A stretch of DNA of 64,000 nucleotides from Podarcis muralis. Taxonomy: Eukaryota. How positions within the stretch are numbered: position 1 is the stretch's first letter; each line of letters opens with the position of its first letter. The notes below the pieces were generated by a model. The model was given only the letters and a program-made list of their open reading frames with translations. It was not told the DNA's origin and did not search any database. The stretch is taken from assembly GCF_964188315.1 (NCBI RefSeq), contig NC_135660.1, positions 19,282,001 through 19,346,000 on the forward strand, in the 5' to 3' direction. Of the stretch, positions 1 through 62,489 are shown one piece after another. A program made the position numbers and the translations under genes.

Positions 1-843
1 ATGCTGCAGCCCAGCAACATGCACAGATGCATTTGCAGATGCAACAAATCGGCAGTCAGCATTGCACTATCTATCAGTGCTGGTCCCCTGTTAAGAAAGG
101 TGTGGAACCTGAAGCAAGGCTTCCTTTGCCCCTCTGCAACCAGTCAAGGGAGGAAAGCAGGTGGCCTGTACTCAGCCTTCCATGCCCTCCAAAAATGAGG
201 CTGGTGCTGTAAATGCTCGCTGCACTTTTGTAACCCAAGAATGTGTAAGAAATAGCTCCAGAGATCTCCAGCCCCTTATTGTCTCCAGCGGCACCATATT
301 TCTTCCCTGAGCTTTAGATATATTAAGCTCCAAGTCAAGGCAAAGGACATTTCGATGCCAGGAGTCCCCTTTCCTGCCCCCCCCTCCACAACTGATTTCA
401 GAAGCCTAAGCGTCCAATTTTTCATCTTATTTTATTGCCTTTTTGTCTGATGTAGAGCAACATTGCCCTCTGCTGGTGATTTCTATGTGTTTGCTGTCAC
501 CTAAGAACAATAAAACGCAAAGCGGCACAGCTAGACTGTTCTACAAGATGTTAGTGTGCATTTTAACATTCCCATTTATGTGTATTTCCCCCGCCCGCCC
601 ACAAAAAAAAGAAGTATGGATTTGGGCCGACACAATACAAACTGGAGGATTTTGTGCATCAGCACAAATTGCAGAGTTGGGAGGGACCCCAAATTTCATC
701 TAGTCCAACCCTCTGCAATGCAGGAATCTCAGCTAAAGCATCCATGACACGAACATTAACTTTTTTTAGCTGCAGCTGGGACTATGGAGTGGGCAGGGGT
801 AGAAATTCAGAACAATTTAATTTAAAGAGGCTGTCTTCTAAGT

Positions 844-1526
844 CAGTGTTTCCCAACCGGTGTTCCCAACACTAGTGTGCCGCGAGACGTTCCCTGGTGT
901 GCCGTGGGAGGGAGGCGGGCGAGGCGGGCGGCGAGAGGCGGGGCGGCGGCGGCGAGGATCCGCGTCGAGCCGGGGGCGGCTCCGCGGTGGTGGTGCCGAG
1001 GTTTCTCTCTCCATTCTCCCCTCACACACACACACAGGAAATAACACAGGATCAGCTGACAGGACCCGGCCAATGGGGCGGCGGCGGGGCAGCGCGCGCA
1101 AAAGGGAGGAGCGCGAGACAGCGGACGAGGAGGAGGCCGGCATGTCCGGGCAGCAGCAGCAACAACAGCAGCAGCAACTCCCGGCGACGGCTCCTCAAGC
1201 CCCGGGCAACCCTACTCCCTCACCGGCCTCAGCCGCCCTCCTGCTCCACCCGCCGCCGCCTCCCCCGCCGCCGCCGGCCACCTCGGCCCTGCCGCCGCCC
1301 CCTCCTCCGCCCGCTATCGCCGCCACCACCACAACAGCCGCCGCCGCCTCAGCTGGGCCCATGCCTGCCGGGAGCGGCGGCGGCAGCAGCAGCAGCAGCG
1401 CCCCGGCGCCCTTCCCTCCCGGCGTGACGCTGCGCGCTGACGTCACGGGGCTGTAATGGTGGTGTGCCTCAAGATTTTTTTCATCAAACAAGTGTGCCTT
1501 TGCCCAAAAAAGGTTGGGAAACACTG
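844..1526 (+). mobile_element. Non-autonomous hAT (Charlie-like) DNA transposon carrying a captured host gene fragment
   Basis: 15-bp TIRs CAGTGTTTCCCAACC (844-858) and GGTTGGGAAACACTG (1512-1526); perfect 8-bp TSD TTCTAAGT (836-843, 1527-1534); subterminal GTGTGCC motifs at both ends; no transposase. Confidence 0.92.
1142..1423 (+). pseudogene. RANBP9: Captured N-terminal coding fragment resembling RANBP9 (RanBPM) exon 1, truncated before the SPRY domain
   Basis: MSGQQQQQQQQQL...AALLLHPPPPPPPPPATS...SSSAPAPFPPG parallels the RANBP9 N-terminus as I recall it (MSGQ-polyP/Q-L...AAALLLHPPPPPPPATA...SSAAAPFPHGDSAL). The frame continues into transposon sequence and stops at 1456. CpG-rich upstream sequence with CCAAT (1070-1074) and GC boxes. 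Confidence 0.8.
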
Positions 1527-1575
1527 TTCTAAGTGACAGTAAACATGGCGTTTTTCAACATGCTGAGCATTAGAC

Positions 1576-1825
1576 CATGGGCAGGCAAACTAAGGCCCGA
1601 GGGCCGAATCTGGCCCAATCGCCTTCTAAATCTGGCCCGTGGACAGTCTGGGAATCAGTGTGTTTTTGCATGAGCAGAATGTGTCCTTTTATTTAAAATG
1701 CATCTCTGGGTTATTTGTGGGGCATAGGAATTTGTTCATTTCTCCCCCAAAAATATAGTCCAGCCCCCCACAAGGTCTGAGGGACAGTGGACTGGCCCCC
1801 TGCTGAAAAAGTTAGCTGATCCCTG
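1576..1825. mobile_element. hAT MITE (about 250 bp)
   Basis: Imperfect TIRs CATGGGCAGGCAAACT / AGTTAGCTGATCCCTG; 8-bp TSD CATTAGAC / CATTAGAT. Confidence 0.8.
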
Positions 1826-1954
1826 CATTAGATAGTAAAAACTGAACATGATTGTGCAGAATTTGGCAGCTGAGAAGTACAAATATTAAGCATGTTCTAG
1901 GTTTGATCAGTGCCTGGACAAAGAACCACCTGGGAATTCTATGACAACCTTTGA

Positions 1955-4900
1955 CAAGTTTAAAAAGTCCAAAAGGTGACAACAGGTGTTATTCATCTTC
2001 TGTTTTCTTTTGTTTTTCTTGTTTTTTCTCTTCTACCGATGTAAATTATAATGACGTTAAAGGTGTACAGTTGGAATGTCAATGGGATGAACGATAAGGG
2101 AAAAAGGAACCGAATTGAGCATATTTTGAAGAAGGAAAGTTTGGACGTCATTTGTCTCCAAGAGACACATATAGCGAGGAAGCATAAAAGAATTCTGATC
2201 AATCAAAGACTAGGGAATGAATTCACATCCTCAGATCGGAGTAAAAAAAGGGGGGTGGTCATTTATATAAACAAACAAATTGAAGCGAAACATCTTTTTA
2301 AAGATGAAGAAGGAAGGATCTCAGCAGTACAAATAAAATGGCAGGGAGAAAAGATAATAATAGTGGGTATATATGCGCCAAATGAGAATAAGTCAGAATT
2401 CTATGGGAGGTTGGAAGCAAAACTATTGGAGTACGCTGACCAGAAAATTATACTATTAGGAGATATGAATGGCGTGGTGTCGTTAGAATCGGACAGATTG
2501 AGGGATTCAAAAGGTAAAGAAGGGAAGTTACCCAGAACCTTCTTCTCCCTGGTTCAAAACTGTAATTTAGTAGATATTTGGAGATTCAAACATCCCTTAG
2601 AAAAGCAATACACTTTCCATTCAGAACCTAACGATTCATCATCGAGACTAGATCAGATGTGGATTTCAAAAGAACTTGTCCCAAGATCTGCACGGGTGGA
2701 GATCCAGGTTAGAACAATCTCAGATCATAATTCAATTAAAATGGAATTGAAAGGGCAGGAGAGCAGACTAAATAGATGGAAACTGAAGGATTACCTGCTG
2801 GATGACCAAGAGATAATAGAAAAAGCTCAAAATAGATTAAAAGAGTACTTCGAAGATAATCTAGGCAGCAATATAAAACCAAGGGTTGTGTGGGACGCAG
2901 GTAAGGCGGTGATGCGGGGATTCTTCATTCAACAGAGCGCAATTAAAAACAAAAAAAGAGAAAAAGGGAAAAAAGAAATTATACAACAACTAGCAGAGAA
3001 CGAACAGAAATTAACTCAAAACCCAAAAAACAAGAAAGTAAAAGAGAACATAAAAGTTCTACAATCCCAATATACAATGCTGATAAATAGAGAGATAGAA
3101 TGGAAAATCAAAAGACTGAGACAGAGAAATTTTGAATACGCTAATAAAACTGGGAAACTATTAGCTTGGCAACTGAAGAAGAGAAAAGAACAGAATACTA
3201 TAAATAGGATAGTGGTGGAAGGAGAAGAGATAAACAAACCTAAAGAAATAAGAAGAGCCTTCTTGGACTTTTATGGAGGCCTCTTCAGGAATACGGAAAA
3301 GAGTAAGACAAGGAAAATAGAGAGATATTTAACATCTAAGAACATCAATAAGATCCCCACAGCGGACAAAGAAAATTTAAACGCCCCAATTAAGACGGAG
3401 GAAATAAAAGCAATCATATCAGATCTAAAAAATGGGAAAGCCCCAGGCCCAGATGGGTTCATCAGCAGATACTATAAAGAGATGGAATCGGTCTTGTTGA
3501 ACCCACTACAGGAAGTAATGAACAAAATTCTAAAGGAAAGAGAAATACCAGAGACGTGGAAGGAGGCACTGATCACATTAATCCCAAAGCAAGACTCAGA
3601 CTTAGAACAAATTAAAAATTACAGGCCGATCTCCCTACTAAATGTAGACTACAAGATCTTTACGGGAGTCCTGGCAAGAAGACTTAAAACTATTTTGGTA
3701 AAAAACATACATAGAGACCAAGCTGGCTTCTTGCCGGGCAGGCAGATTAAAGACAATATAAGGAATATTATAAACATTATAGAATATCTAACAGAAAGAT
3801 GCGACAAACAAGGTGCACTGTTATTCGTAGACGCTGAGAAAGCGTTTGATAACGTAAACTGGGAATTCCTGTTGAAACATATGGACTACATGGAAGTAGG
3901 CATCGAATTTTTAAATGGGATAAAAGCTATTTATACGGAACAAAAAGCAAGACTGATAATAAATGGGGTGGAAACGGAAGAAATAACAGTATCCAAAGGA
4001 ACAAGACAGGGATGCCCGCTGTCTCCACTGGTATTTATAATGATACTAGAGGTTTTGCTAAATTCCATCAGAGACAACAAAGAAATTAAAGGAATCAGGG
4101 TCGGTCAGCATGAATACAAAACTAAAGCTTTCGCAGACGATCTGGTTGTAATAATGGAAGACCCATTGGGCTCAATAAAAGAGGTACTCAAAGAATTTGA
4201 TCAATTTGGGGAAGTTGCGGGCTTTAAGTTAAACAAAAGGAAAACGAAAATATTAACTAAGAATATGCAGGCAGATAAGATTGAGGAACTACAGAAAGAA
4301 ACGGGAATAGACGTGACAAAGAAGGTGAAATACTTAGGGGTATGGGTAACGCCAAAAAATATAGATCTTTTCAAAAACAATTATGAAACAGTATGGAAAG
4401 GAGTTAAAAAAGATATAGAAGTGTGGGGTCGGCTCAGATTATCTCTTTGGGGAAGGATAGACACAATTAAAATGTCGGTGTTACCAAGAGTTTTATTTCT
4501 CTTCCAAAACATTCCAATTATAAAAGGTACAAAGATATTTAGAACCTGGCATAGAGAGATTTCTAAATTCATCTGGCAGGGGAGGAAGCCGAGAGTTAAG
4601 TTTAAACTATTGACAGACACGAAAGAAAGGGGAGGCTTCGCCCTTCCCGATCTGAAACTTTACTATGAGGCATCGTGCCTATGCTGGGTCAAAACATGGA
4701 TAAAATTGGAAGACAGGGAAGTGTTAGACTTGGAGGGGCACGACAACCGTTTTGGATGGCACGCCTATCTATGGCATGGGCGAAAGAAGGGCCATAAGGG
4801 ATTTGAAAATCATATATTTAGGGGTCCCCTGATGGAGGTATGGGAAAGATACAAGGACATGCTAGAACCTAAAACACCCCAATGGTTATCTCCATTAGAG

Positions 4901-6029
4901 GTTATGGCTGTTAAAAAGACTAATATGAGGGACAAATGGGCAACTTATGAACATCTGTTGATGAAGGAGGAAGGAAAGTGGAAAATGAGGCCATATGACC
5001 AGGTCAAATCCCAAGTATACGATTGGCTACACTACCACCAGATAAACGACATGTTTAGAAAAGACGTTAAAGACAAAGGATATGCCGACAAAAACTCCAG
5101 ATTCCAAACTGAGATTCTGGGAGATAACACAAAAATCTTATCTAAAATGTATAAGCAATTACTGGATTGGAACTTAGTTGACGAGGAGGTCAAGGCGGTA
5201 ATGACACACTGGGCCAGAGACATTGGCCGTAATATTTATTTTGAAGAGTGGGAAAAACTCTGGAAGCAACATCTTAAATTTACAGCTTGTGTGTTACTTA
5301 AAGAGAATCTAATGAAAATGTTTTACCGTTGGTATTTGACCCCGGTCAAATTAGCTAAAATGTACGGATCCTGCAACAAATGTTGGAAATGCAAGGACAG
5401 GGAGGGGACTTTTTACCACATGTGGTGGGAATGCCAAAAGATCAAAGGGTTCTGGGAGAGTGTATACAATGAAATGAAGAAAATGTTAAGATACACCTTT
5501 GTTAAAAAACCCGAGGCGTTCCTACTAGGTTTGGTAGGAACAGAGATAAAGAAAAAGGACTACAAACTATTTCAATATGCTACAACGGCAGCAAGGGTCC
5601 TGATAGCTAAGAATTGGAAACAAGAGAGTTTACCAACAATGGAGGAATGGAGATCAAAACTATTAGAATATGTGGAGATGGACAGGATGACAGGTAAAAT
5701 TAGATATATAAAAGATCAGAGGTTTGTTAAAAGTTGGGAAAACTTTACGAAATATCTGGAAAATCTAACGGACGAACAGATAACACTGGCGGGTTATAAA
5801 GGTGCTCTGTAAAAAGTAAGGGTAATACCAAAGGAAAATAGAGGAACGAGAACAGCTTGTGGCATTACAAACAAGGAAATGCGGATGTATAGTTTAATGT
5901 TACTTTGGAAGATTCGTGGAACGTCAGAAGGAAGTCTTATCTTTTGCTTTTTGTGAACAATATGAATACTGACTCATCTGTTTTGTGTTTTGTATTTTGA
6001 AATTTAATAAAAATTATGCAGAAAAAAAA
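1955..6029 (+). mobile_element. 5'-truncated L1-clade LINE (no ORF1 or 5'UTR), 4075 bp
   Basis: Intact ORF2, about 200-bp 3'UTR, AATAAA at 6006-6011 and A-tail at 6022-6031. Confidence 0.95.
2051..5812 (+). CDS. L1-type ORF2 protein: APE endonuclease, reverse transcriptase and CCHC knuckle (1253 aa)
   Basis: EN motifs SWNVNG, CLQETH, IYAPN, GDMN, RLD, SDH; RT motifs GKAPGPDGF, YRPISLLNVDYK, DAEKAFD, RQGCPLSP, FADD, YLGV; C-terminal CWKC-x8-H-x4-C. No stops or frameshifts. Confidence 0.97.
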   Translation: MTLKVYSWNVNGMNDKGKRNRIEHILKKESLDVICLQETHIARKHKRILINQRLGNEFTSSDRSKKRGVVIYINKQIEAKHLFKDEEGRISAVQIKWQGEKIIIVGIYAPNENKSEFYGRLEAKLLEYADQKIILLGDMNGVVSLESDRLRDSKGKEGKLPRTFFSLVQNCNLVDIWRFKHPLEKQYTFHSEPNDSSSRLDQMWISKELVPRSARVEIQVRTISDHNSIKMELKGQESRLNRWKLKDYLLDDQEIIEKAQNRLKEYFEDNLGSNIKPRVVWDAGKAVMRGFFIQQSAIKNKKREKGKKEIIQQLAENEQKLTQNPKNKKVKENIKVLQSQYTMLINREIEWKIKRLRQRNFEYANKTGKLLAWQLKKRKEQNTINRIVVEGEEINKPKEIRRAFLDFYGGLFRNTEKSKTRKIERYLTSKNINKIPTADKENLNAPIKTEEIKAIISDLKNGKAPGPDGFISRYYKEMESVLLNPLQEVMNKILKEREIPETWKEALITLIPKQDSDLEQIKNYRPISLLNVDYKIFTGVLARRLKTILVKNIHRDQAGFLPGRQIKDNIRNIINIIEYLTERCDKQGALLFVDAEKAFDNVNWEFLLKHMDYMEVGIEFLNGIKAIYTEQKARLIINGVETEEITVSKGTRQGCPLSPLVFIMILEVLLNSIRDNKEIKGIRVGQHEYKTKAFADDLVVIMEDPLGSIKEVLKEFDQFGEVAGFKLNKRKTKILTKNMQADKIEELQKETGIDVTKKVKYLGVWVTPKNIDLFKNNYETVWKGVKKDIEVWGRLRLSLWGRIDTIKMSVLPRVLFLFQNIPIIKGTKIFRTWHREISKFIWQGRKPRVKFKLLTDTKERGGFALPDLKLYYEASCLCWVKTWIKLEDREVLDLEGHDNRFGWHAYLWHGRKKGHKGFENHIFRGPLMEVWERYKDMLEPKTPQWLSPLEVMAVKKTNMRDKWATYEHLLMKEEGKWKMRPYDQVKSQVYDWLHYHQINDMFRKDVKDKGYADKNSRFQTEILGDNTKILSKMYKQLLDWNLVDEEVKAVMTHWARDIGRNIYFEEWEKLWKQHLKFTACVLLKENLMKMFYRWYLTPVKLAKMYGSCNKCWKCKDREGTFYHMWWECQKIKGFWESVYNEMKKMLRYTFVKKPEAFLLGLVGTEIKKKDYKLFQYATTAARVLIAKNWKQESLPTMEEWRSKLLEYVEMDRMTGKIRYIKDQRFVKSWENFTKYLENLTDEQITLAGYKGAL

Positions 6030-6115
6030 AACTTTTTTTAGCTGCAGCTGGGACTATGGAGTGGGCAGGGGTAGAAATTCAGAACAATTTAATTTAAAGA
6101 GGCTGTCTTCTAAGT

Positions 6116-6798
6116 CAGTGTTTCCCAACCGGTGTTCCCAACACTAGTGTGCCGCGAGACGTTCCCTGGTGTGCCGTGGGAGGGAGGCGGGCGAGTCGGG
6201 CGGCGAGAGGCGGGGCGGCGGCGGCGAGGATCCGCGTCGAGCCGGGGGCGGCTCCGCGGTGGTGGTGCCGAGGTTTCTCTCTCCATTCTCCCCTCACACA
6301 CACACACAGGAAATAACACAGGATCAGCTGACAGGACCCGGCCAATGGGGCGGCGGCGGGGCAGCGCGCGCAAAAGGGAGGAGCGCGAGACAGCGGACGA
6401 GGAGGAGGCCGGCATGTCCGGGCAGCAGCAGCAACAACAGCAGCAGCAACTCCCGGCGACGGCTCCTCAAGCCCCGGGCAACCCTACTCCCTCACCGGCC
6501 TCAGCCGCCCTCCTGCTCCACCCGCCGCCGCCTCCCCCGCCGCCGCCGGCCACCTCGGCCCTGCCGCCGCCCCCTCCTCCGCCCGCTATCGCCGCCACCA
6601 CCACAACAGCCGCCGCCGCCTCAGCTGGGCCCATGCCTGCCGGGAGCGGCGGCGGCAGCAGCAGCAGCAGCGCCCCGGCGCCCTTCCCTCCCGGCGTGAC
6701 GCTGCGCGCTGACGTCACGGGGCTGTAATGGTGGTGTGCCTCAAGATTTTTTTCATCAAACAAGTGTGCCTTTGCCCAAAAAAGGTTGGGAAACACTG
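6116..6798 (+). mobile_element. Second copy of the RANBP9-carrying hAT element
   Basis: Same TIRs and TTCTAAGT TSD (6108-6115, 6799-6806). Confidence 0.92.
6414..6695 (+). pseudogene. RANBP9: Second copy of the RANBP9-like exon 1 fragment
   Basis: Same translation as 1142-1423. Confidence 0.8.
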
Positions 6799-6847
6799 TT
6801 CTAAGTGACAGTAAACATGGCGTTTTTCAACATGCTGAGCATTAGAC

Positions 6848-7097
6848 CATGGGCAGGCAAACTAAGGCCCGAGGGCCGAATCTGGCCCAATCGCCTTCTA
6901 AATCTGGCCCGTGGACAGTCTGGGAATCAGTGTGTTTTTGCATGAGCAGAATGTGTCCTTTTATTTAAAATGCATCTCTGGGTTATTTGTGGGGCATAGG
7001 AATTTGTTCATTTCTCCCCCAAAAATATAGTCCAGCCCCCCACAAGGTCTGAGGGACAGTGGACTGGCCCCCTGCTGAAAAAGTTAGCTGATCCCTG
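6848..7097. mobile_element. Second copy of the 250-bp hAT MITE
   Basis: Matches 1576-1825 including the TSD. Confidence 0.8.
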
Positions 7098-7968
7098 CAT
7101 TAGATAGTAAAAACTGAACATGATTGTGCAGAATTTGGCAGCTGAGAAGTACAAATATTAAGCATGTTCTAGGTTTGATCAGTGCCTGGACAAAGAACCA
7201 CCTGGGAATTCTATGACAACCTTTGATTCCAACTCCCATCAGCCCCAGCCAGCATAACCAGTGATCATGGTTGATGGGACTTGTAGTCCAGCAACCTCTG
7301 GAGGCCTTTATGGACACTGACTGGAAGAAAGATGGACTATAAAGTAGACTTGAACACCACAGAAATAAGTTAAATGAGACAAAACAAATACATTAGTGTT
7401 ATCCCCCTCCTCCACCCCTTTTCTTCATTATTTTCCCGCCTATTCCCATTAATTAATATAATTCAGTGGCCCAAGAGAGGCCATCTTTATTTTCATTTGA
7501 ACTGAAAGGTTGTGCATTAAACTGGGGATTTAAGAGTAACTTCTTCCGACATCCAAGAGAAGCTCAACTAATCAGTCTCCAACAGCTATGAGTCTTCTGA
7601 GGGAGCACTGGAGGGGGGGGTGGCGGGAATTAAGTGAGAAGACACCAGCCTGCAAACATTTTCTCCATCAATTTGCATGTTAATGGAAGAATGCAGAACT
7701 TGTTAGTGTGGAGTACCAGGGACCAACAGAACCAGAGAGTCAATGCCACGTGAACTGATAAATGCACCCCACTTTTTACGGGACAGCAGGGGGAATTGCT
7801 GGGAAGCGTTAGCTGGCAACTCTGTTAGGCTTTTTACAGAGGTGGGTGACATCCTTGCATGTCACCAAGTGATTGGCAGCTGGTCTGCAAGGACCATTTT
7901 GTCTTGTGTTTTGAGCAGATAATTGGGTACCAGAAGGGTCCTAAGAGCTTATTGTGATGGATGAAACA

Positions 7969-8425
7969 TGTTGTTGTTGTTCTTTAGTCGTTTAGTCGTG
8001 TCCGACTCTTCGTGACCCCATGGACCAGAGCACACCAGGCACTCCTATCTTCCACTGCCTCCCGCAGTTTGGTCAAACTCATGCTGGTAGCTTCGAGAAC
8101 ACTATCCAACCATCTCGTCCTCTGTCGTCCCCTTCTCCTTGTGCCCTCCATCTTTCCCAACATCAGGGTCTTTTCCAGGGAGTCTTCTCTTCTCATGAGG
8201 TGGCCAAAGTATTGGAGTCTCAGCTTCACGATCTGTCCTTCCAGTGAGCACTCGGGGCTGATTTCCTTAAGGATGGATAGGTTTGATCTTCTTGCAGTCC
8301 ATGGGACTCTCAAGAGTCTCCTCCAGCACCATAATTCAAAAGCATCAATTCTTTGGCAATCAGCCTTCTTTATGGTCCAGCTCTCACTTCCATACATCAC
8401 TACTGGGAAAACCATAGCTTTAACA
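7969..8425 (-). mobile_element. Bov-B (RTE clade) LINE 3' fragment
   Basis: Translation KAMVFPVVMYGSESWTIKKAD...IDAFELWCWRRLLRVPWTARRSN...HGVTKSRTRLND; (ACA)n tail. Confidence 0.92.
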
Positions 8426-13197: not shown

Positions 13198-14480
13198 GGT
13201 GCCATTCAGATGTTATTAAACGACAGCTTCTGCCTTCCTTTTGGCCAATGGTGTTTTATGGAAAGCAGTATAGAAATATTTAAGTAACAAAATAAAAAAA
13301 TAAAAAAACAGGCAACAGGAAAATGCATCCACCAGGCTCAAAACAGTTCCCCATACAAGAGCTGACTTTAAACTCTCCCCGCGCAAACACCTGTGCAACA
13401 TTTATTCAGCAATATTTTGAAATGTTCAGTCATATGTCCCTGTACATTCAACAGATCATCAGATAAAGTAATGATGCAATGACACACCAGCTTAAGCACA
13501 CAATGCTGTTGGGTGTTTTGGCCAATGTCATGTATTGCCACTCAAAATCAGGCCATTTCCAATGCCTTATTGCCTTGCATAGACCCACATGGCTCCATTA
13601 ATGGGAATGAACCCACAAATCAATGGGAGGAGGATTAACAAAAAAAAGTTCGTAAAACTGGGAAGATGTAATATCGGTGAAACAGGTAGAAAGCCTGGTG
13701 AATTATGGGGAATGCGACAATAAAAAGGCCACAAGTATGTTTCAATTTTTAAAGTTCTCCACCAAGGGGGACAGCATATTTGATGAGAAGTTCCATTTCA
13801 AAGCACCCCTTCTGGAGCATAAAACTGACAACCACATTAATCTGGTTCGGCCTGGTATGAACAATCCTCATGGCTCTCTCTGAAACAAATAATACGATGT
13901 CTCTTTCAGAGGAACTCCTTGTTTCAAGGTTGCTACATTTTGAATTCATCTTCATGAAGCCCCCCTGCTTACAGTGAAGTACCTTCATTTTTCACCACAA
14001 CAGCTCTATAGTGCACAATGCACCTGCTTCCCTGGCATCTTAACTCTGCACTTGGCGCTTGCAAGTGCTCCCTTTGATGCTCCTGAGAGAGGAGATGAAA
14101 GAAAAATCCACTGAGCCAAGGCGCCTTACTCAGCTGCTGCAGAGGTAGAGGCCCTTTCAAGCCCATAGGCCCCATTTCCTTGTTGCCAGCTTCTTGAGGG
14201 GTGAGCAGGGTCAAAATGTGGGCCAGGCCAAAGCTGTCAATGGACACAGCCGCTCCACAGTTTCTCACCCACATGCAACACACAAACATACCAGTGAGGG
14301 TGAGAGACATTTGGCCTTCAAGAAGTTGCTGAACTACAACTCCCATCAGCCCTAGGAAGCATGACCAATGTTCAGGAATGATGGGAGTTGCAGTTCAGCA
14401 GTATCTGGAGGGCCAAATGTTCCCCACACCTGCTGTACACACAAACGCACACACACACACATCCTGACATCTTCACATCC

Positions 14481-15222
14481 NNNNNNNNNNNNNNNNNNNN
14501 NNNNNNNNNNNNNNNNNNNNNNNNNNNNNNNNNNNNNNNNNNNNNNNNNNNNNNNNNNNNNNNNNNNNNNNNNNNNNNNNNNNNNNNNNNNNNNNNNNNN
14601 NNNNNNNNNNNNNNNNNNNNNNNNNNNNNNNNNNNNNNNNNNNNNNNNNNNNNNNNNNNNNNNNNNNNNNNNNNNNNNNNNNNNNNNNNNNNNNNNNNNN
14701 NNNNNNNNNNNNNNNNNNNNNNNNNNNNNNNNNNNNNNNNNNNNNNNNNNNNNNNNNNNNNNNNNNNNNNNNNNNNNNNNNNNNNNNNNNNNNNNNNNNN
14801 NNNNNNNNNNNNNNNNNNNNNNNNNNNNNNNNNNNNNNNNNNNNNNNNNNNNNNNNNNNNNNNNNNNNNNNNNNNNNNNNNNNNNNNNNNNNNNNNNNNN
14901 NNNNNNNNNNNNNNNNNNNNNNNNNNNNNNNNNNNNNNNNNNNNNNNNNNNNNNNNNNNNNNNNNNNNNNNNNNNNNNNNNNNNNNNNNNNNNNNNNNNN
15001 NNNNNNNNNNNNNNNNNNNNNNNNNNNNNNNNNNNNNNNNNNNNNNNNNNNNNNNNNNNNNNNNNNNNNNNNNNNNNNNNNNNNNNNNNNNNNNNNNNNN
15101 NNNNNNNNNNNNNNNNNNNNNNNNNNNNNNNNNNNNNNNNNNNNNNNNNNNNNNNNNNNNNNNNNNNNNNNNNNNNNNNNNNNNNNNNNNNNNNNNNNNN
15201 NNNNNNNNNNNNNNNNNNNNNN
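14481..15222. other. Assembly gap (742 N)
   Basis: Run of N; right flank is a GATA repeat. Confidence 1.
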
Positions 15223-20158: not shown

Positions 20159-21081
20159 CTGTGACATTTTTACAATAGAATGTTCTGTTATTGGTGTTCT
20201 TTGGAATGTCCCTACATGTCAAATGACTTATACATCACATTTCATCTCTTGCCTTTCACTCAAAATGAGGGCACATCTCATTCCAAACAAACATATAGTA
20301 AGTGCAAATAAACATTTTAGGTTGCATTCCATGAATTCAATTGTTCGTCAGGTAATTGTGACCTGTGAAAGAAGGTTTCCTGATACAAAGATGGTCAGAC
20401 AAATAGAATAAATTCTGCTGGAATCATAGAATTGTAGAGTTTGATCTAAGGGTCATCTAGTCCAAATCCCTGAAATGCAGGAATCACAGGTAGTCCAATC
20501 CCTGACAGTTGGACATCCAACCTTGGTTGGTTGGTTGGTTGGTTGGTTAATTGCTTGGCTGGCTGGCCTCATCTGACTCAAGCACACCCGCCTCCTCCTC
20601 CTCCTCCTCAGTAGGCTGCCTCAGCCTCATCTAAAGATCTGGGGGCAAGGCGCCCACGAAACTGCTGCTACTGCCAGCAACAGCAGCAGGATGCACAGTG
20701 AAGAGCATTCCCTGCCTCTTGAGAGAGGCGCAGGCTGAGGGAGAGGGTGTGCTATTTTTTTTTTCTTCTGAAATTTTGCACCCCAATAGTTTTGCACCCA
20801 AGGCATCTGACCCTTTGGACCCCTCCCCCCCCCCCCAATGCTATGCCGGTGTCTGTGATTGTAAGTTGTTTTAGACTTTTCTTAACATTGAGGGTTGTAA
20901 CGCAGTCTGGAACCTGAGGGTGAAGGGCAAGATGATGCTAACCCTATTGGAGGTCAGAAGCTGAAAAAAGAGGTTCAAGCCTGAAAATGTGAAAGAAGTT
21001 GGGGTTTCCTTCATTTCACGCTCCGAAGACATTACTGTGCAAAACATTCATTTTTCAAACAGTTCACTTGTGTGTCCATAC

Positions 21082-31078: not shown

Positions 31079-31510
31079 NNNNNNNNNNNNNNNNNNNNNN
31101 NNNNNNNNNNNNNNNNNNNNNNNNNNNNNNNNNNNNNNNNNNNNNNNNNNNNNNNNNNNNNNNNNNNNNNNNNNNNNNNNNNNNNNNNNNNNNNNNNNNN
31201 NNNNNNNNNNNNNNNNNNNNNNNNNNNNNNNNNNNNNNNNNNNNNNNNNNNNNNNNNNNNNNNNNNNNNNNNNNNNNNNNNNNNNNNNNNNNNNNNNNNN
31301 NNNNNNNNNNNNNNNNNNNNNNNNNNNNNNNNNNNNNNNNNNNNNNNNNNNNNNNNNNNNNNNNNNNNNNNNNNNNNNNNNNNNNNNNNNNNNNNNNNNN
31401 NNNNNNNNNNNNNNNNNNNNNNNNNNNNNNNNNNNNNNNNNNNNNNNNNNNNNNNNNNNNNNNNNNNNNNNNNNNNNNNNNNNNNNNNNNNNNNNNNNNN
31501 NNNNNNNNNN
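31079..31510. other. Assembly gap (432 N)
   Basis: Run of N. Confidence 1.
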
Positions 31511-35673: not shown

Positions 35674-37708
35674 TGCCCATCTACTCTGCATCCAGCATGC
35701 ACCCACCACTGGTTTGGGAAATGGTATACACAAGGCATTAGCTACAATCCATAACTATCCTGTCATTTCTTGTGGAATACTGCATTTTTGTTACGTTTCC
35801 CCCCCCCCCCCCAAACTAGCTTCAATCTGAATTCAGAAAAAGGAGGACCTAGCTGGTAGGTAATGTTTGAACAACCAGCTTTTAGGACAAAGTCTAAGCT
35901 CCTGCCACAATGAACTGCTGGTGATGCATGGGCAAGAATCTCCCTTTAATGGCTATAGAGTTTAAAATGTTTCTAATTACACTCTATTGTAAGTAGCAAT
36001 AAACAGTATGAAACCAATAAAGTGCATATTGCCTTTCATTTATTGTTCAGGGTGATAAATCTACTGCATTATGAGAGGGGTGGTGAATCTTTTTTTTTTT
36101 CCCCTAATAGCTTTGCATCCAAAAATTGGAAAGAAAATGAAATATAATAACAGACGCAAAAACTGCAATGTTGTTACAAAAGGGCAATTTGCACTTGCAA
36201 TTTGGAAGGAAATTGCTTGCTTGGGTTCAATCAATTGCATCTTAATTATGATGCACACACACTTTGAATCAAAAAGTTTAAATTTTACTTGTGCATCAGC
36301 AAAGTTACCCACCGCTTTTAAGAACAACATCTCGATTTCATTCCTCATCCATTCCTTGGCTGGCATCATTTTTCTAAACAATACCGTTTATCTGAATTGC
36401 TTTATGGTGTGAATATCTAAAAGAAGGGGATGTCTATAATTATGTCCAGCCCTGGAAAGCGATGAAGTGCAATCTGTTTTAAATAGTAGATCAAGCTGCT
36501 GATATGTTTCTTTTCCCCCCTCCCTTTTTTTTCATTTAAAGTAAGAAAGTTCGGGACAGTATCACATTCATCTCTCCTTTTTCAAACGACTTACTTTTGC
36601 CTGCAATACTCAAAATGCTTCTGCTCCCTTGATCTTAATTAAAGCTGCCTGAAAAGACTGCTGAAGGAATCATTGAATCTGGCTTTTTTTAAAAAAAAAA
36701 TATTAGGATTTGTTGTCTCGTTTTTTTATTATTTTATTGATAGGATTATGATTTATGGATTGTGACCTACTCTGGGAGCCTTTTTAAACTGAAAGGTAAC
36801 ATTGAAATCACTTGACCGTGATTCCTGCATTGCAGGAGTTTAGACTAGATGATTCTTTGGGTCCCTCCCAACTATACAGTTCTGAATCTATGACACACTT
36901 TGCAGGGGGCAAACCTATTAGCTACAAAGAATCGTCAAAGCAATCCTATGCATCAGGCTGGGCAATCTGGGGTCCTTGGGCCCAATATGAAAAGTCATCT
37001 TCAAGCAATTAGTTCAGATCATATTCCTTCCATGTGCAGCCCTCCAGATGTGGTTAGACTTTAACTTCCATTGATCTGATGTGTAGAGAGCTATTCCTAT
37101 TCTAATTAATTCAAGAGGTTTCTGGAAGCTTCTCTGTGTGAAAGAAACTGGTGCAAGCTGGAAGTTTCTGGCTGACATGTAAGTTTCTATTCTGCCTAGA
37201 AACAAGCAGAAGGTTCATAATGTTTGGGTTATTCCTTCCGAGAAGCTGAGTGCAGCTGGCTTAAACTGGTTCTGTTATCTCTTTCTGTCAAGGTCATGCT
37301 GACTATAATATTAAAGCCAGAAGGAGCATGGGTTTTCCTTTCTATCTCTCTTTCCTTCTGGCGTGATGGTTTGTATATAGTATGCTTAGTGTTAAAGTTT
37401 TAGTCTTATTATAAGTCATTGTAAGTTTAAATTAAGTCTGCTGCAACTGGATTTCTTATGGACAGTGCCAATCCTGAATGTATTGGATTTGTGACCGTTA
37501 TGTTCATTTGCCTTCAGTAAAGCTCTGCTGGATGAAATATGAATTGCCTCTGGTCTATTTTCGGGAATCCTGCAACGTGTTTAAGTTTTTACTCTGCTGA
37601 CTATACGTTGGAATCTGCTCTGAATCAATATGAGTAGAATTCACGTCACCATCAGCCCCAGGCAACATGGCCGATGGCCGGGAATGATGAAAACTGTAGT
37701 CCTAAACA

Positions 37709-45451: not shown

Positions 45452-45896
45452 NNNNNNNNNNNNNNNNNNNNNNNNNNNNNNNNNNNNNNNNNNNNNNNNN
45501 NNNNNNNNNNNNNNNNNNNNNNNNNNNNNNNNNNNNNNNNNNNNNNNNNNNNNNNNNNNNNNNNNNNNNNNNNNNNNNNNNNNNNNNNNNNNNNNNNNNN
45601 NNNNNNNNNNNNNNNNNNNNNNNNNNNNNNNNNNNNNNNNNNNNNNNNNNNNNNNNNNNNNNNNNNNNNNNNNNNNNNNNNNNNNNNNNNNNNNNNNNNN
45701 NNNNNNNNNNNNNNNNNNNNNNNNNNNNNNNNNNNNNNNNNNNNNNNNNNNNNNNNNNNNNNNNNNNNNNNNNNNNNNNNNNNNNNNNNNNNNNNNNNNN
45801 NNNNNNNNNNNNNNNNNNNNNNNNNNNNNNNNNNNNNNNNNNNNNNNNNNNNNNNNNNNNNNNNNNNNNNNNNNNNNNNNNNNNNNNNNNNNNNNC
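45452..45896. other. Assembly gap (445 N)
   Basis: Run of N next to a GATA repeat, immediately upstream of the paralog's first coding exon. Confidence 1.
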
Positions 45897-49025: not shown

Positions 49026-49143
49026 TTTCATAGAATTTATATACTGCTTGATTGTAAAATAAAATAAAATAAAAGAAGGTGGTTTGCAAAAAAAAAAGAT
49101 AAACAATAAAAATGTTAGCAAAAACAAAACATTCAGAAAATTT

Positions 49144-49479
49144 TGTTGTTGTTGTTTAGTGATTTAGCCATGTCCGACTCTTCGTGACCCCATGGACCAG
49201 AGCATGCCAGGCACTCCTGTCTTCCACGGCCTCCTGCAGTTTGGTCAAACTCATGCCGGTAGCTTCGAGAACACTATCCAACCATCTCGCCCTCTGTCGT
49301 CCCCTTCTCTTTGTGCCCTCCATCTTTCCCAACATCAGGGTCTTTTCCAGGGAGTCTTCTCTTCTCATGAGGTGGCCAAAGTACTGGAGCTTCAGGATCT
49401 GTCCTTCCAGTGAGCACTCAGGGCTGATTTCCTTAAGAATGGAGAGGTTTGATCTTCTTGCAGTCCATGGGACTCTCAG
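49144..49479 (-). mobile_element. Bov-B LINE 3' fragment
   Basis: MRREDSLEKTLMLGKMEG...HGVTKSRT; (ACA)n tail. Confidence 0.9.
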
Positions 49480-62045: not shown

Positions 62046-62489
62046 ATAGTTAAAGCTATGGTTTTCCCAGTAGTGATGTATGCAAGTGAGAGCTGGACCA
62101 TAAAGAAGGCTGATTGCTGAAGAATTGATGCTTTTGAATTATGGTGCTGGAGGAGATTCTTGAGAGTTTCATGGACTGCAAGAAGATCAAACCTCTCCAT
62201 TCTTAAGGACATCAGCCCTGAGTGCTCACTGGAAGGACAGATCGTGAAGCTGAGGCTCCAATACTTTGGCTACCTCATGAGAAGAGAAGACTCTCTGGAA
62301 AAGACCCTGATGTTGGGAAAGATGGAGGGCACAAGGAGAAGGGGACGACAGATGACGAGGTGGTTGGACAGTGTTCTCGAAGCATGAGTTTGACCAAACT
62401 GCGGGAGGCAGTGGAAGACAAGAGTGCCTGGCGTGCTGTGGTCCATGGGGTCACAAAGAGTCGGACACGACTAAATGACTAAACAACAA
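62046..62489 (+). mobile_element. Bov-B LINE 3' fragment
   Basis: KAMVFPVVMYASESWTIKKAD...; HGVTKSRTRLND; ACAACA tail. Confidence 0.92.

Follow-up and report, generated by a model that had tools for sequence, protein, structure and literature searches.

A 1,197-bp direct duplication flanking a 5′-truncated L1 in Podarcis muralis: a probable kilobase-scale target-site duplication

In an ordinary L1 insertion, the second strand is cut 5–30 nt from the first nick and the target-site duplication (TSD) has the same length. Here we analyse a locus of the lizard Podarcis muralis at which a 5′-truncated L1 lies between two copies of a 1,197-bp direct repeat, and which we interpret as a probable TSD of kilobase scale. 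The sequence examined was a 64-kb stretch of Podarcis muralis DNA, referred to as the window throughout.

Long TSDs have been described in a few settings. In HeLa cells, TSDs of >100 bp accompanied up to 10% of the recovered L1 events, and in cells deficient in nucleotide excision repair (NER) the TSD median was ~1.5 kb, with a maximum of >5 kb (PMC5223499). Tandem duplications of 1–10 kb with an L1 at the joint, found in tumours and in L1-induced clones, have been regarded as large TSDs (bioRxiv 10.1101/2024.12.14.628481), and an L1-bridged tandem duplication of 22.6 Mb was explained by a sister-chromatid model (PMC7058536). An initial annotation of the window had called long L1 TSDs rare outcomes, in agreement with this literature, in which kilobase-scale TSDs are real but rare (PMC5223499, PMC7058536, bioRxiv 10.1101/2024.12.14.628481). 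A limited literature search returned no natural germline L1 TSD of this size, a negative that does not show such cases to be absent from the literature.

Ungapped, base-by-base comparison identified two direct repeats in the window, D1 (758–1954) and D2 (6030–7226), each 1,197 bp long, with a single mismatch between them (G924 vs T6196). Repeat finding seeded the same pair. Identity is lost sharply at both limits: on the left, T757 stands opposite A6029, and on the right, CAAGTT (from 1955) stands opposite TTCCAA (from 7227). Both copies abut a 4,075-bp L1 (1955–6029), which gives the order A-D-L1-D-B across the locus, A and B being the outer flanks. The layout and the one-base difference had been proposed in the initial annotation, as had the start of the truncated L1 directly after D copy 1; the comparison confirmed them, with D1 ending at 1954 and the first L1 base at 1955. 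A chance repeat is impossible at 1,196/1,197 identity. BLAST against the whole 64-kb window returned no third copy of D and, with the insert and both flanks as the query, no second copy of the L1 insert. The features of the locus are as follows, with the strand given where a feature has one.

1–757: left flank A; its last ~90 bp are a high-copy interspersed repeat (within-window BLAST).
754–761, reverse strand: putative first-strand nick; top strand CATT/AACT, bottom strand 5′-AGTT/AATG-3′.
758–1954: D copy 1, upstream; one of the two copies of the duplicated target (repeat finding, base-by-base comparison, BLAST).
844–1526, forward strand: Pack-type hAT element, copy 1, 683 bp, with terminal inverted repeats (TIRs) and a TSD; interior 70% GC.
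924: sole difference between the D copies, G at 924 and T at 6196.
1955–6029, forward strand: 5′-truncated L1 insert, 4,075 bp (ends of D identity, Pfam domains, relatives).
1955–2050, forward strand: L1 upstream of open reading frame 2 (ORF2); probably the last 7 codons of ORF1 and a 71-nt T-rich spacer.
2051–5812, forward strand: intact L1 ORF2, 1,253 aa, with an APE-type endonuclease, a reverse transcriptase and a C-terminal Cys/His motif.
5813–6029, forward strand: L1 3′ untranslated region (UTR), with AATAAA at 6006–6011, last non-A base G6021 and A tail 6022–6029.
6030–7226: D copy 2, downstream; carries hAT copy 2 at 6116–6798 and T6196.
7227–7310: beginning of right flank B, with an interspersed repeat from ~7230 that has an 80% match at 14337–14411.

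The direct repeat of the target adjoins both the 5′ end and the poly(A) end of the L1, and both boundaries are base-exact. At the 3′ end, a run of ten A's (6022–6031) includes two (6030–6031) that are common to the L1 tail and to the start of D. The remaining 8 A's cannot be target-derived. The initial annotation had placed the start of D copy 2 at the poly(A) end. A related contig, L001, carries the same AATAAAAATTA-GCA terminal motif followed by poly(A) in the 3′-end alignment. Because L001 ends alike, the 3′ end of the L1 is complete and D2 begins exactly at the end of the tail. The A tail of L001 is A13 and that of the window L1 is A8–10; judged by this relative, a short tail is typical of the family.

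At the 5′ end, translation of 1955–2050 gave 7 codons and a stop (1977–1979), followed by the 71-nt T-rich spacer. Two more distant L1 contigs, L002 and L003, are similarly organized, with an ORF1 stop, a spacer of 42–86 nt and the ORF2 ATG. The architecture, as opposed to any alignment, thus suggests that the truncation fell within the last codons of ORF1.

The start of D copy 1 had been described as a TT/AA site of the L1 endonuclease type, and the sequence there does read CATT/AACT. The site is supportive, not strong, evidence: TTAA occupies 0.58% of window positions, and 0.83% of those where the preceding base is not A, so that the random expectation is ~0.6–0.8%. No short TSD was found at the L1 ends, where TTTGA precedes the element and AACTT follows the tail.

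Other origins of a flanking repeat were considered and rejected. Transduction at the 3′ end does not apply, as there is no poly(A) after D2, and 5′ transduction of D would require the L1 to have landed precisely where another D begins. A D-D tandem that was already in place and then received an ordinary insertion does not fit because there is no short TSD at the L1 ends, which a later insertion of that kind would bear. In a wider version of this idea, D became a tandem by replication slippage or double-strand-break repair, and the L1 cDNA (complementary DNA) either served as filler or arrived later at the D-D joint. Endonuclease-independent capture of L1 at breaks is known (PMC1920257). Against such an origin, the element has a complete 3′ end, a poly(A) and a TT/AA site, features typically missing in endonuclease-independent events, and its ends match the repeat ends to the base; we consider it highly improbable.

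A target-primed L1 insertion with an unusually long TSD can be compared with several described systems. Engineered human L1 in cultured cells (Servant et al. 2017, PMC5223499, citing Gilbert 2002/2005 and Symer 2002) shares with the lizard locus the poly(A), the endonuclease-type site, the 5′ truncation, and a target duplication of 0.1–6 kb, with a 1–2 kb class tabulated, that abuts both insert ends. That system is somatic and uses a marked human L1 in HeLa or NER-deficient cells, whereas the lizard element is endogenous and fixed or segregating in the germline; the A tail is 20–90 nt in the former and 8–10 nt in the latter. The L1-bridged duplications of tumours and L1-induced clones (PMC7058536; bioRxiv 10.1101/2024.12.14.628481) have the same A-D-L1-D-B order, an endonuclease motif at the 3′ breakpoint and sizes of 1–10 kb. 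They differ in their cancer or experimental context, in sizes that extend to megabases, and in the proposed involvement of break-induced replication or sister-chromatid invasion. An ordinary 5′-truncated L1 with a 5–30-bp TSD has the same poly(A), AATAAA, TT/AA site and 5′ truncation, but the lizard TSD is ~50–100 times longer. At 1,197 bp, the duplication lies beyond the 100-bp limit of the long-TSD class, with no secondary short TSD, and would have originated in a single event. The lizard locus conforms to the structural definition of that class and differs from earlier cases in its setting, being an endogenous lizard L1 in the germline.

We consider it likely that the locus represents a single endonuclease-dependent, target-primed L1 insertion that used a distant top-strand end and duplicated 1.2 kb of target together with its hAT element. 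The steps of this mechanism are all deduced from the anatomy of the locus. ORF2p would have nicked the bottom strand at 757/758 (5′-AGTT/AATG-3′), and, as the junction suggests, the exposed 3′ end (...TT) would have served as the primer for reverse transcription from the L1 poly(A). Synthesis of the cDNA would then have halted, or changed to another template, close to the ORF1 end. Because the cDNA ended there, the insert would have lacked the promoter and ORF1 and been dead on arrival, although its ORF2 is open. The cDNA end would have been joined to the top strand at a 3′ end located 1,197 nt downstream of the first nick. Fill-in of the two long single-stranded stretches would then generate A-D-L1-D-B and duplicate the whole cassette, including the hAT.

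The distal top-strand end could have more than one source. For NER-deficient cells, use of an unrelated nick at a distance upon failure of the normal second nick has been proposed (PMC5223499), and invasion of a sister-chromatid break downstream of the integration site has been proposed elsewhere (PMC7058536). Break-induced replication is also a published route to the same product. A second nick in the same duplex, break-induced replication and a sister-chromatid break are non-exclusive, and the sequence cannot choose among them. The initial annotation had specified second-strand cleavage about 1.2 kb away. All anatomical predictions of that proposal hold, but cleavage of the same duplex is just one of several published routes.

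The same product could also result from two L1 insertions of the same orientation and subfamily, located at the two edges of D on different haplotypes and then combined by unequal crossing-over. The outcome would be structurally identical, including the TT/AA site and the lack of short TSDs, and the L1 subfamily is both multi-copy and young in these genomes, with contigs showing 0 differences and several-fold depth. This course of events requires two rare insertions 1.2 kb apart plus a recombination, and no A-L1 joint (757 to 1955) was present among the matches listed; we give it very little credence.

A single long-TSD insertion has furthermore to be weighed against an assembly artefact. A heterozygous L1 with a short TSD may have been inserted at 757/758, and a contig of the empty haplotype, A-D (to 1954), may have been attached, with no N's in between, to a filled-haplotype contig that starts inside the L1 at 1955 and continues through the poly(A) into D-B. 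We judge such a join unlikely. It would make D a single-copy segment and the apparent 5′ truncation a mere contig start, and we regard these corollaries as equally doubtful. The artefact predicts the poly(A)-D junction, the TT/AA site and the near-identity of the copies as well as a long TSD does, and one difference in 1,197 bp is within the heterozygosity range of lizards. An interspersed repeat starts within ~3 bp of the D-B boundary, and contig ends are common at such places. The sized gaps elsewhere imply that the assembly was scaffolded and possibly gap-filled, a concern already raised in the initial annotation. Such gaps do exist, as N runs at 14481–15222, 31079–31510 and 45452–45895, but none lies within 7 kb of the structure. 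The nearest is 7.2 kb away, and the structure is contained in >14 kb of unbroken sequence; the artefact nevertheless keeps some weight.

Several features disfavour such a join. Two contigs would have to be connected gapless and overlap-free, which is unusual, and unbroken sequence of >14 kb through many high-copy repeats suggests support from long reads or clones. Immediately before the L1 at 1955 there is no remnant of A, nor of a short TSD. A single short-TSD insertion cannot yield both inner joints, and most artefact scenarios fail for this reason. False duplications from haplotype retention resemble this locus in having two near-identical neighbouring copies whose difference is close to heterozygosity. 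They usually flank a gap or contig end, whereas the lizard copies have no N within 7 kb and their boundaries coincide with those of the element base for base. The artefact and a genuine long TSD differ only in that the artefact predicts no reads across 1954/1955.

We compared the public runs X15, X1, X5 and X8 over 700–6699, using short Logan contigs in which high-copy repeats dominate. The repeats of D reached summed contig depths of 1e5, and the L1 interior was covered by paralogue contigs at 95–100% identity. No row addressing 924 or 6196 was found among the matches listed for the four runs. Exact-protein look-ups with ORF2 and two ORFs in D found no second assembly of the locus on record.

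The following observations weigh against a genuine long TSD. Among the matches listed, all short, repeat-dominated contigs, none bridged 1954/1955 or 6029/6030, and no SINGLE-layout (long-read) run was present among the public runs searched for the locus. The single mismatch is equally well explained by a heterozygous single-nucleotide polymorphism between haplotype copies of one D. The L1 identity of 1955–2050 is based on architecture: in L001, the nearest relative represented by DNA, just 23 nt precede ORF2 and their alignment to the window is poor, and L002 and L003 are too distant for alignment at the L1 5′ boundary. At the putative first nick, AGTT/AA is a partial match to the TTTT/AA consensus in which the two upstream pyrimidines are absent. 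Finally, the top-strand break as it stands, TTGA/TTCC, does not resemble an endonuclease site; a parental L1 with GA immediately before the truncation point would allow the break to be CTTT/GA.

The single G/T difference and an open ORF2 of the same length as in its relatives indicate that the event is young. With an assumed rate of 1–2.4e-9 substitutions per site per year, which makes the estimate rough, the insertion would be ~0.2–0.4 million years (Myr) old, with a Poisson upper bound of ~2 Myr. Among public runs, we identified 20 partial holders of the locus in 6 studies. The word shares for 1700–2300 separated two study groups (0.65–0.78 vs 0.32–0.52), the D part alone accounting for ~0.4. 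Run X8 showed almost no cover over 5900–6029, the last 130 nt of the L1 3′ UTR, although such holes prove nothing. The split in word shares and the hole in X8 hint at, and are compatible with, a presence/absence polymorphism, with counts confounded by paralogous L1 copies. An empty allele would share both outer junctions with the filled allele.

The insert has a GC content of 37.5% and one long ORF. Pfam matches in ORF2 comprised Exo_endo_phos at residues 7–226 (E 2.5e-18) and RVT_1 at residues 511–765 (E 7.3e-40), and a Cys/His motif was located near the C-terminus at residues 1111–1128. In a search of 5.8 billion proteins, the nearest relatives of ORF2 were lacertid reverse-transcriptase-domain proteins of 1,253 aa with 83–84% identity; these are Podarcis muralis proteins and one Logan contig product. 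P0001 and P0002, the closest relatives, have the same length as the window ORF2, and no contig is recorded for P0002. Shorter fragments reached identities of up to 89%. Identity fell to 41–45% with Anolis proteins, and to 28–37% over the full length with mammalian and fish L1 ORF2. By these similarities, the insert is assigned to the L1 clade of long interspersed nuclear elements (LINEs) and to a lacertid lineage within it, and its host to the lacertids rather than the anoles.

The contigs L001 (Logan ERR14657324), L002 (ERR14654836) and L003 (ERR14657318), which come from further public runs, are 4–5.5 kb long and carry complete open L1 ORF2s, with identities to the window ORF2 of 84%, 55% and 51%, respectively. 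L002 and L003 also carry ORF1s. Since all three have complete open ORF2s, several divergent L1 lineages with intact genes coexist in related lizards.

The duplicated segment D is a mosaic of the hAT element and further high-copy repeats. The presence of a Pack-hAT inside D, noted in the initial annotation, was corroborated: the element at 844–1526 has TIRs (CAGTGTTTCCCAACC) that match perfectly over 15/15 nt, and an 8-bp TSD (TTCTAAGT) at 836–843 and 1527–1534; with its TSD it occupies 836–1534 in D1 and 6108–6806 in D2. Because both D copies hold the hAT, the hAT insertion predates the L1 event. The hAT cargo includes an ATG-started poly-Q/poly-P/poly-A frame at 1142–1456 (copy 2: 6414–6728) within a stretch of 70% GC. 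The 104-aa poly-Q/poly-P ORF gave no match in phmmer searches of PDB sequences or in Pfam.

The cargo has the same orientation as the L1 ORF2 downstream of D1. This putative CpG-rich gene 5′ end thus lies in sense, ~0.5–1.1 kb upstream of an intact ORF2 that has neither ORF1 nor its own promoter. It is conceivable, though very unlikely, that the duplicated cargo drives an ORF2-only transcript from the L1 and that the encoded reverse transcriptase acts in trans on short interspersed nuclear elements (SINEs). If this were true, a heritable kilobase-scale L1 TSD in a reptile would also have made a new expression unit.

In contigs of runs X15 and X8, position 835 was joined directly to 1527, with 8 letters that fit both sides. 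This joint corresponds to a hAT-free form with a single TTCTAAGT; its depth was 22.6 and 11.9, which is single-copy-like, and its sides were only 33–55 letters long. The species may be polymorphic for the Pack-type hAT insertion, or the hAT flanks may have a paralogue that lacks the element. Elsewhere in D, from 1750 rightward, 12–17 contigs matched in all four runs, preceded by a long T run in place of the local sequence. From this pattern, 1750 may be the end of a retroelement of very high copy number that lies in minus orientation, so that its poly(A) appears as poly(T). The summed contig depth over 1700–1899 was 0.5–1.4 million.

Repeats were also observed around the structure. In flank A, the high-copy interspersed repeat at 667–749 stops abruptly at 749, which is 8 bp short of the L1 target site. 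At this position, 6–13 contigs in all four runs go on with GATGGCCATCCAA... rather than with the local sequence. Weaker copies of this repeat were detected by within-window BLAST at 36820–36881 (minus strand) and 20453–20507 (plus strand). Another interspersed repeat is present in three copies with 92–93% identity, at 7977–8400, at 62073–62489 (minus strand) and at 49137–49478 (plus strand). The motif GTCCGACTCTTCGTGACCCCATGGAC of this repeat may resemble the 3′ region of BovB/RTE-type LINEs.

If the structure proved to be an artefact, it would be a useful example of a heterozygous L1 insertion that mimics a long TSD in a scaffolded assembly. If the long TSD is real, as we consider likely, the locus would be a clean non-mammalian germline case of an L1 insertion duplicating 1.2 kb of target, an outcome hitherto described mainly in cultured human cells and tumours. 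Aberrant resolution of L1 insertion would then add small segmental duplications in the course of normal vertebrate evolution, here copying a DNA transposon that carries a gene fragment.

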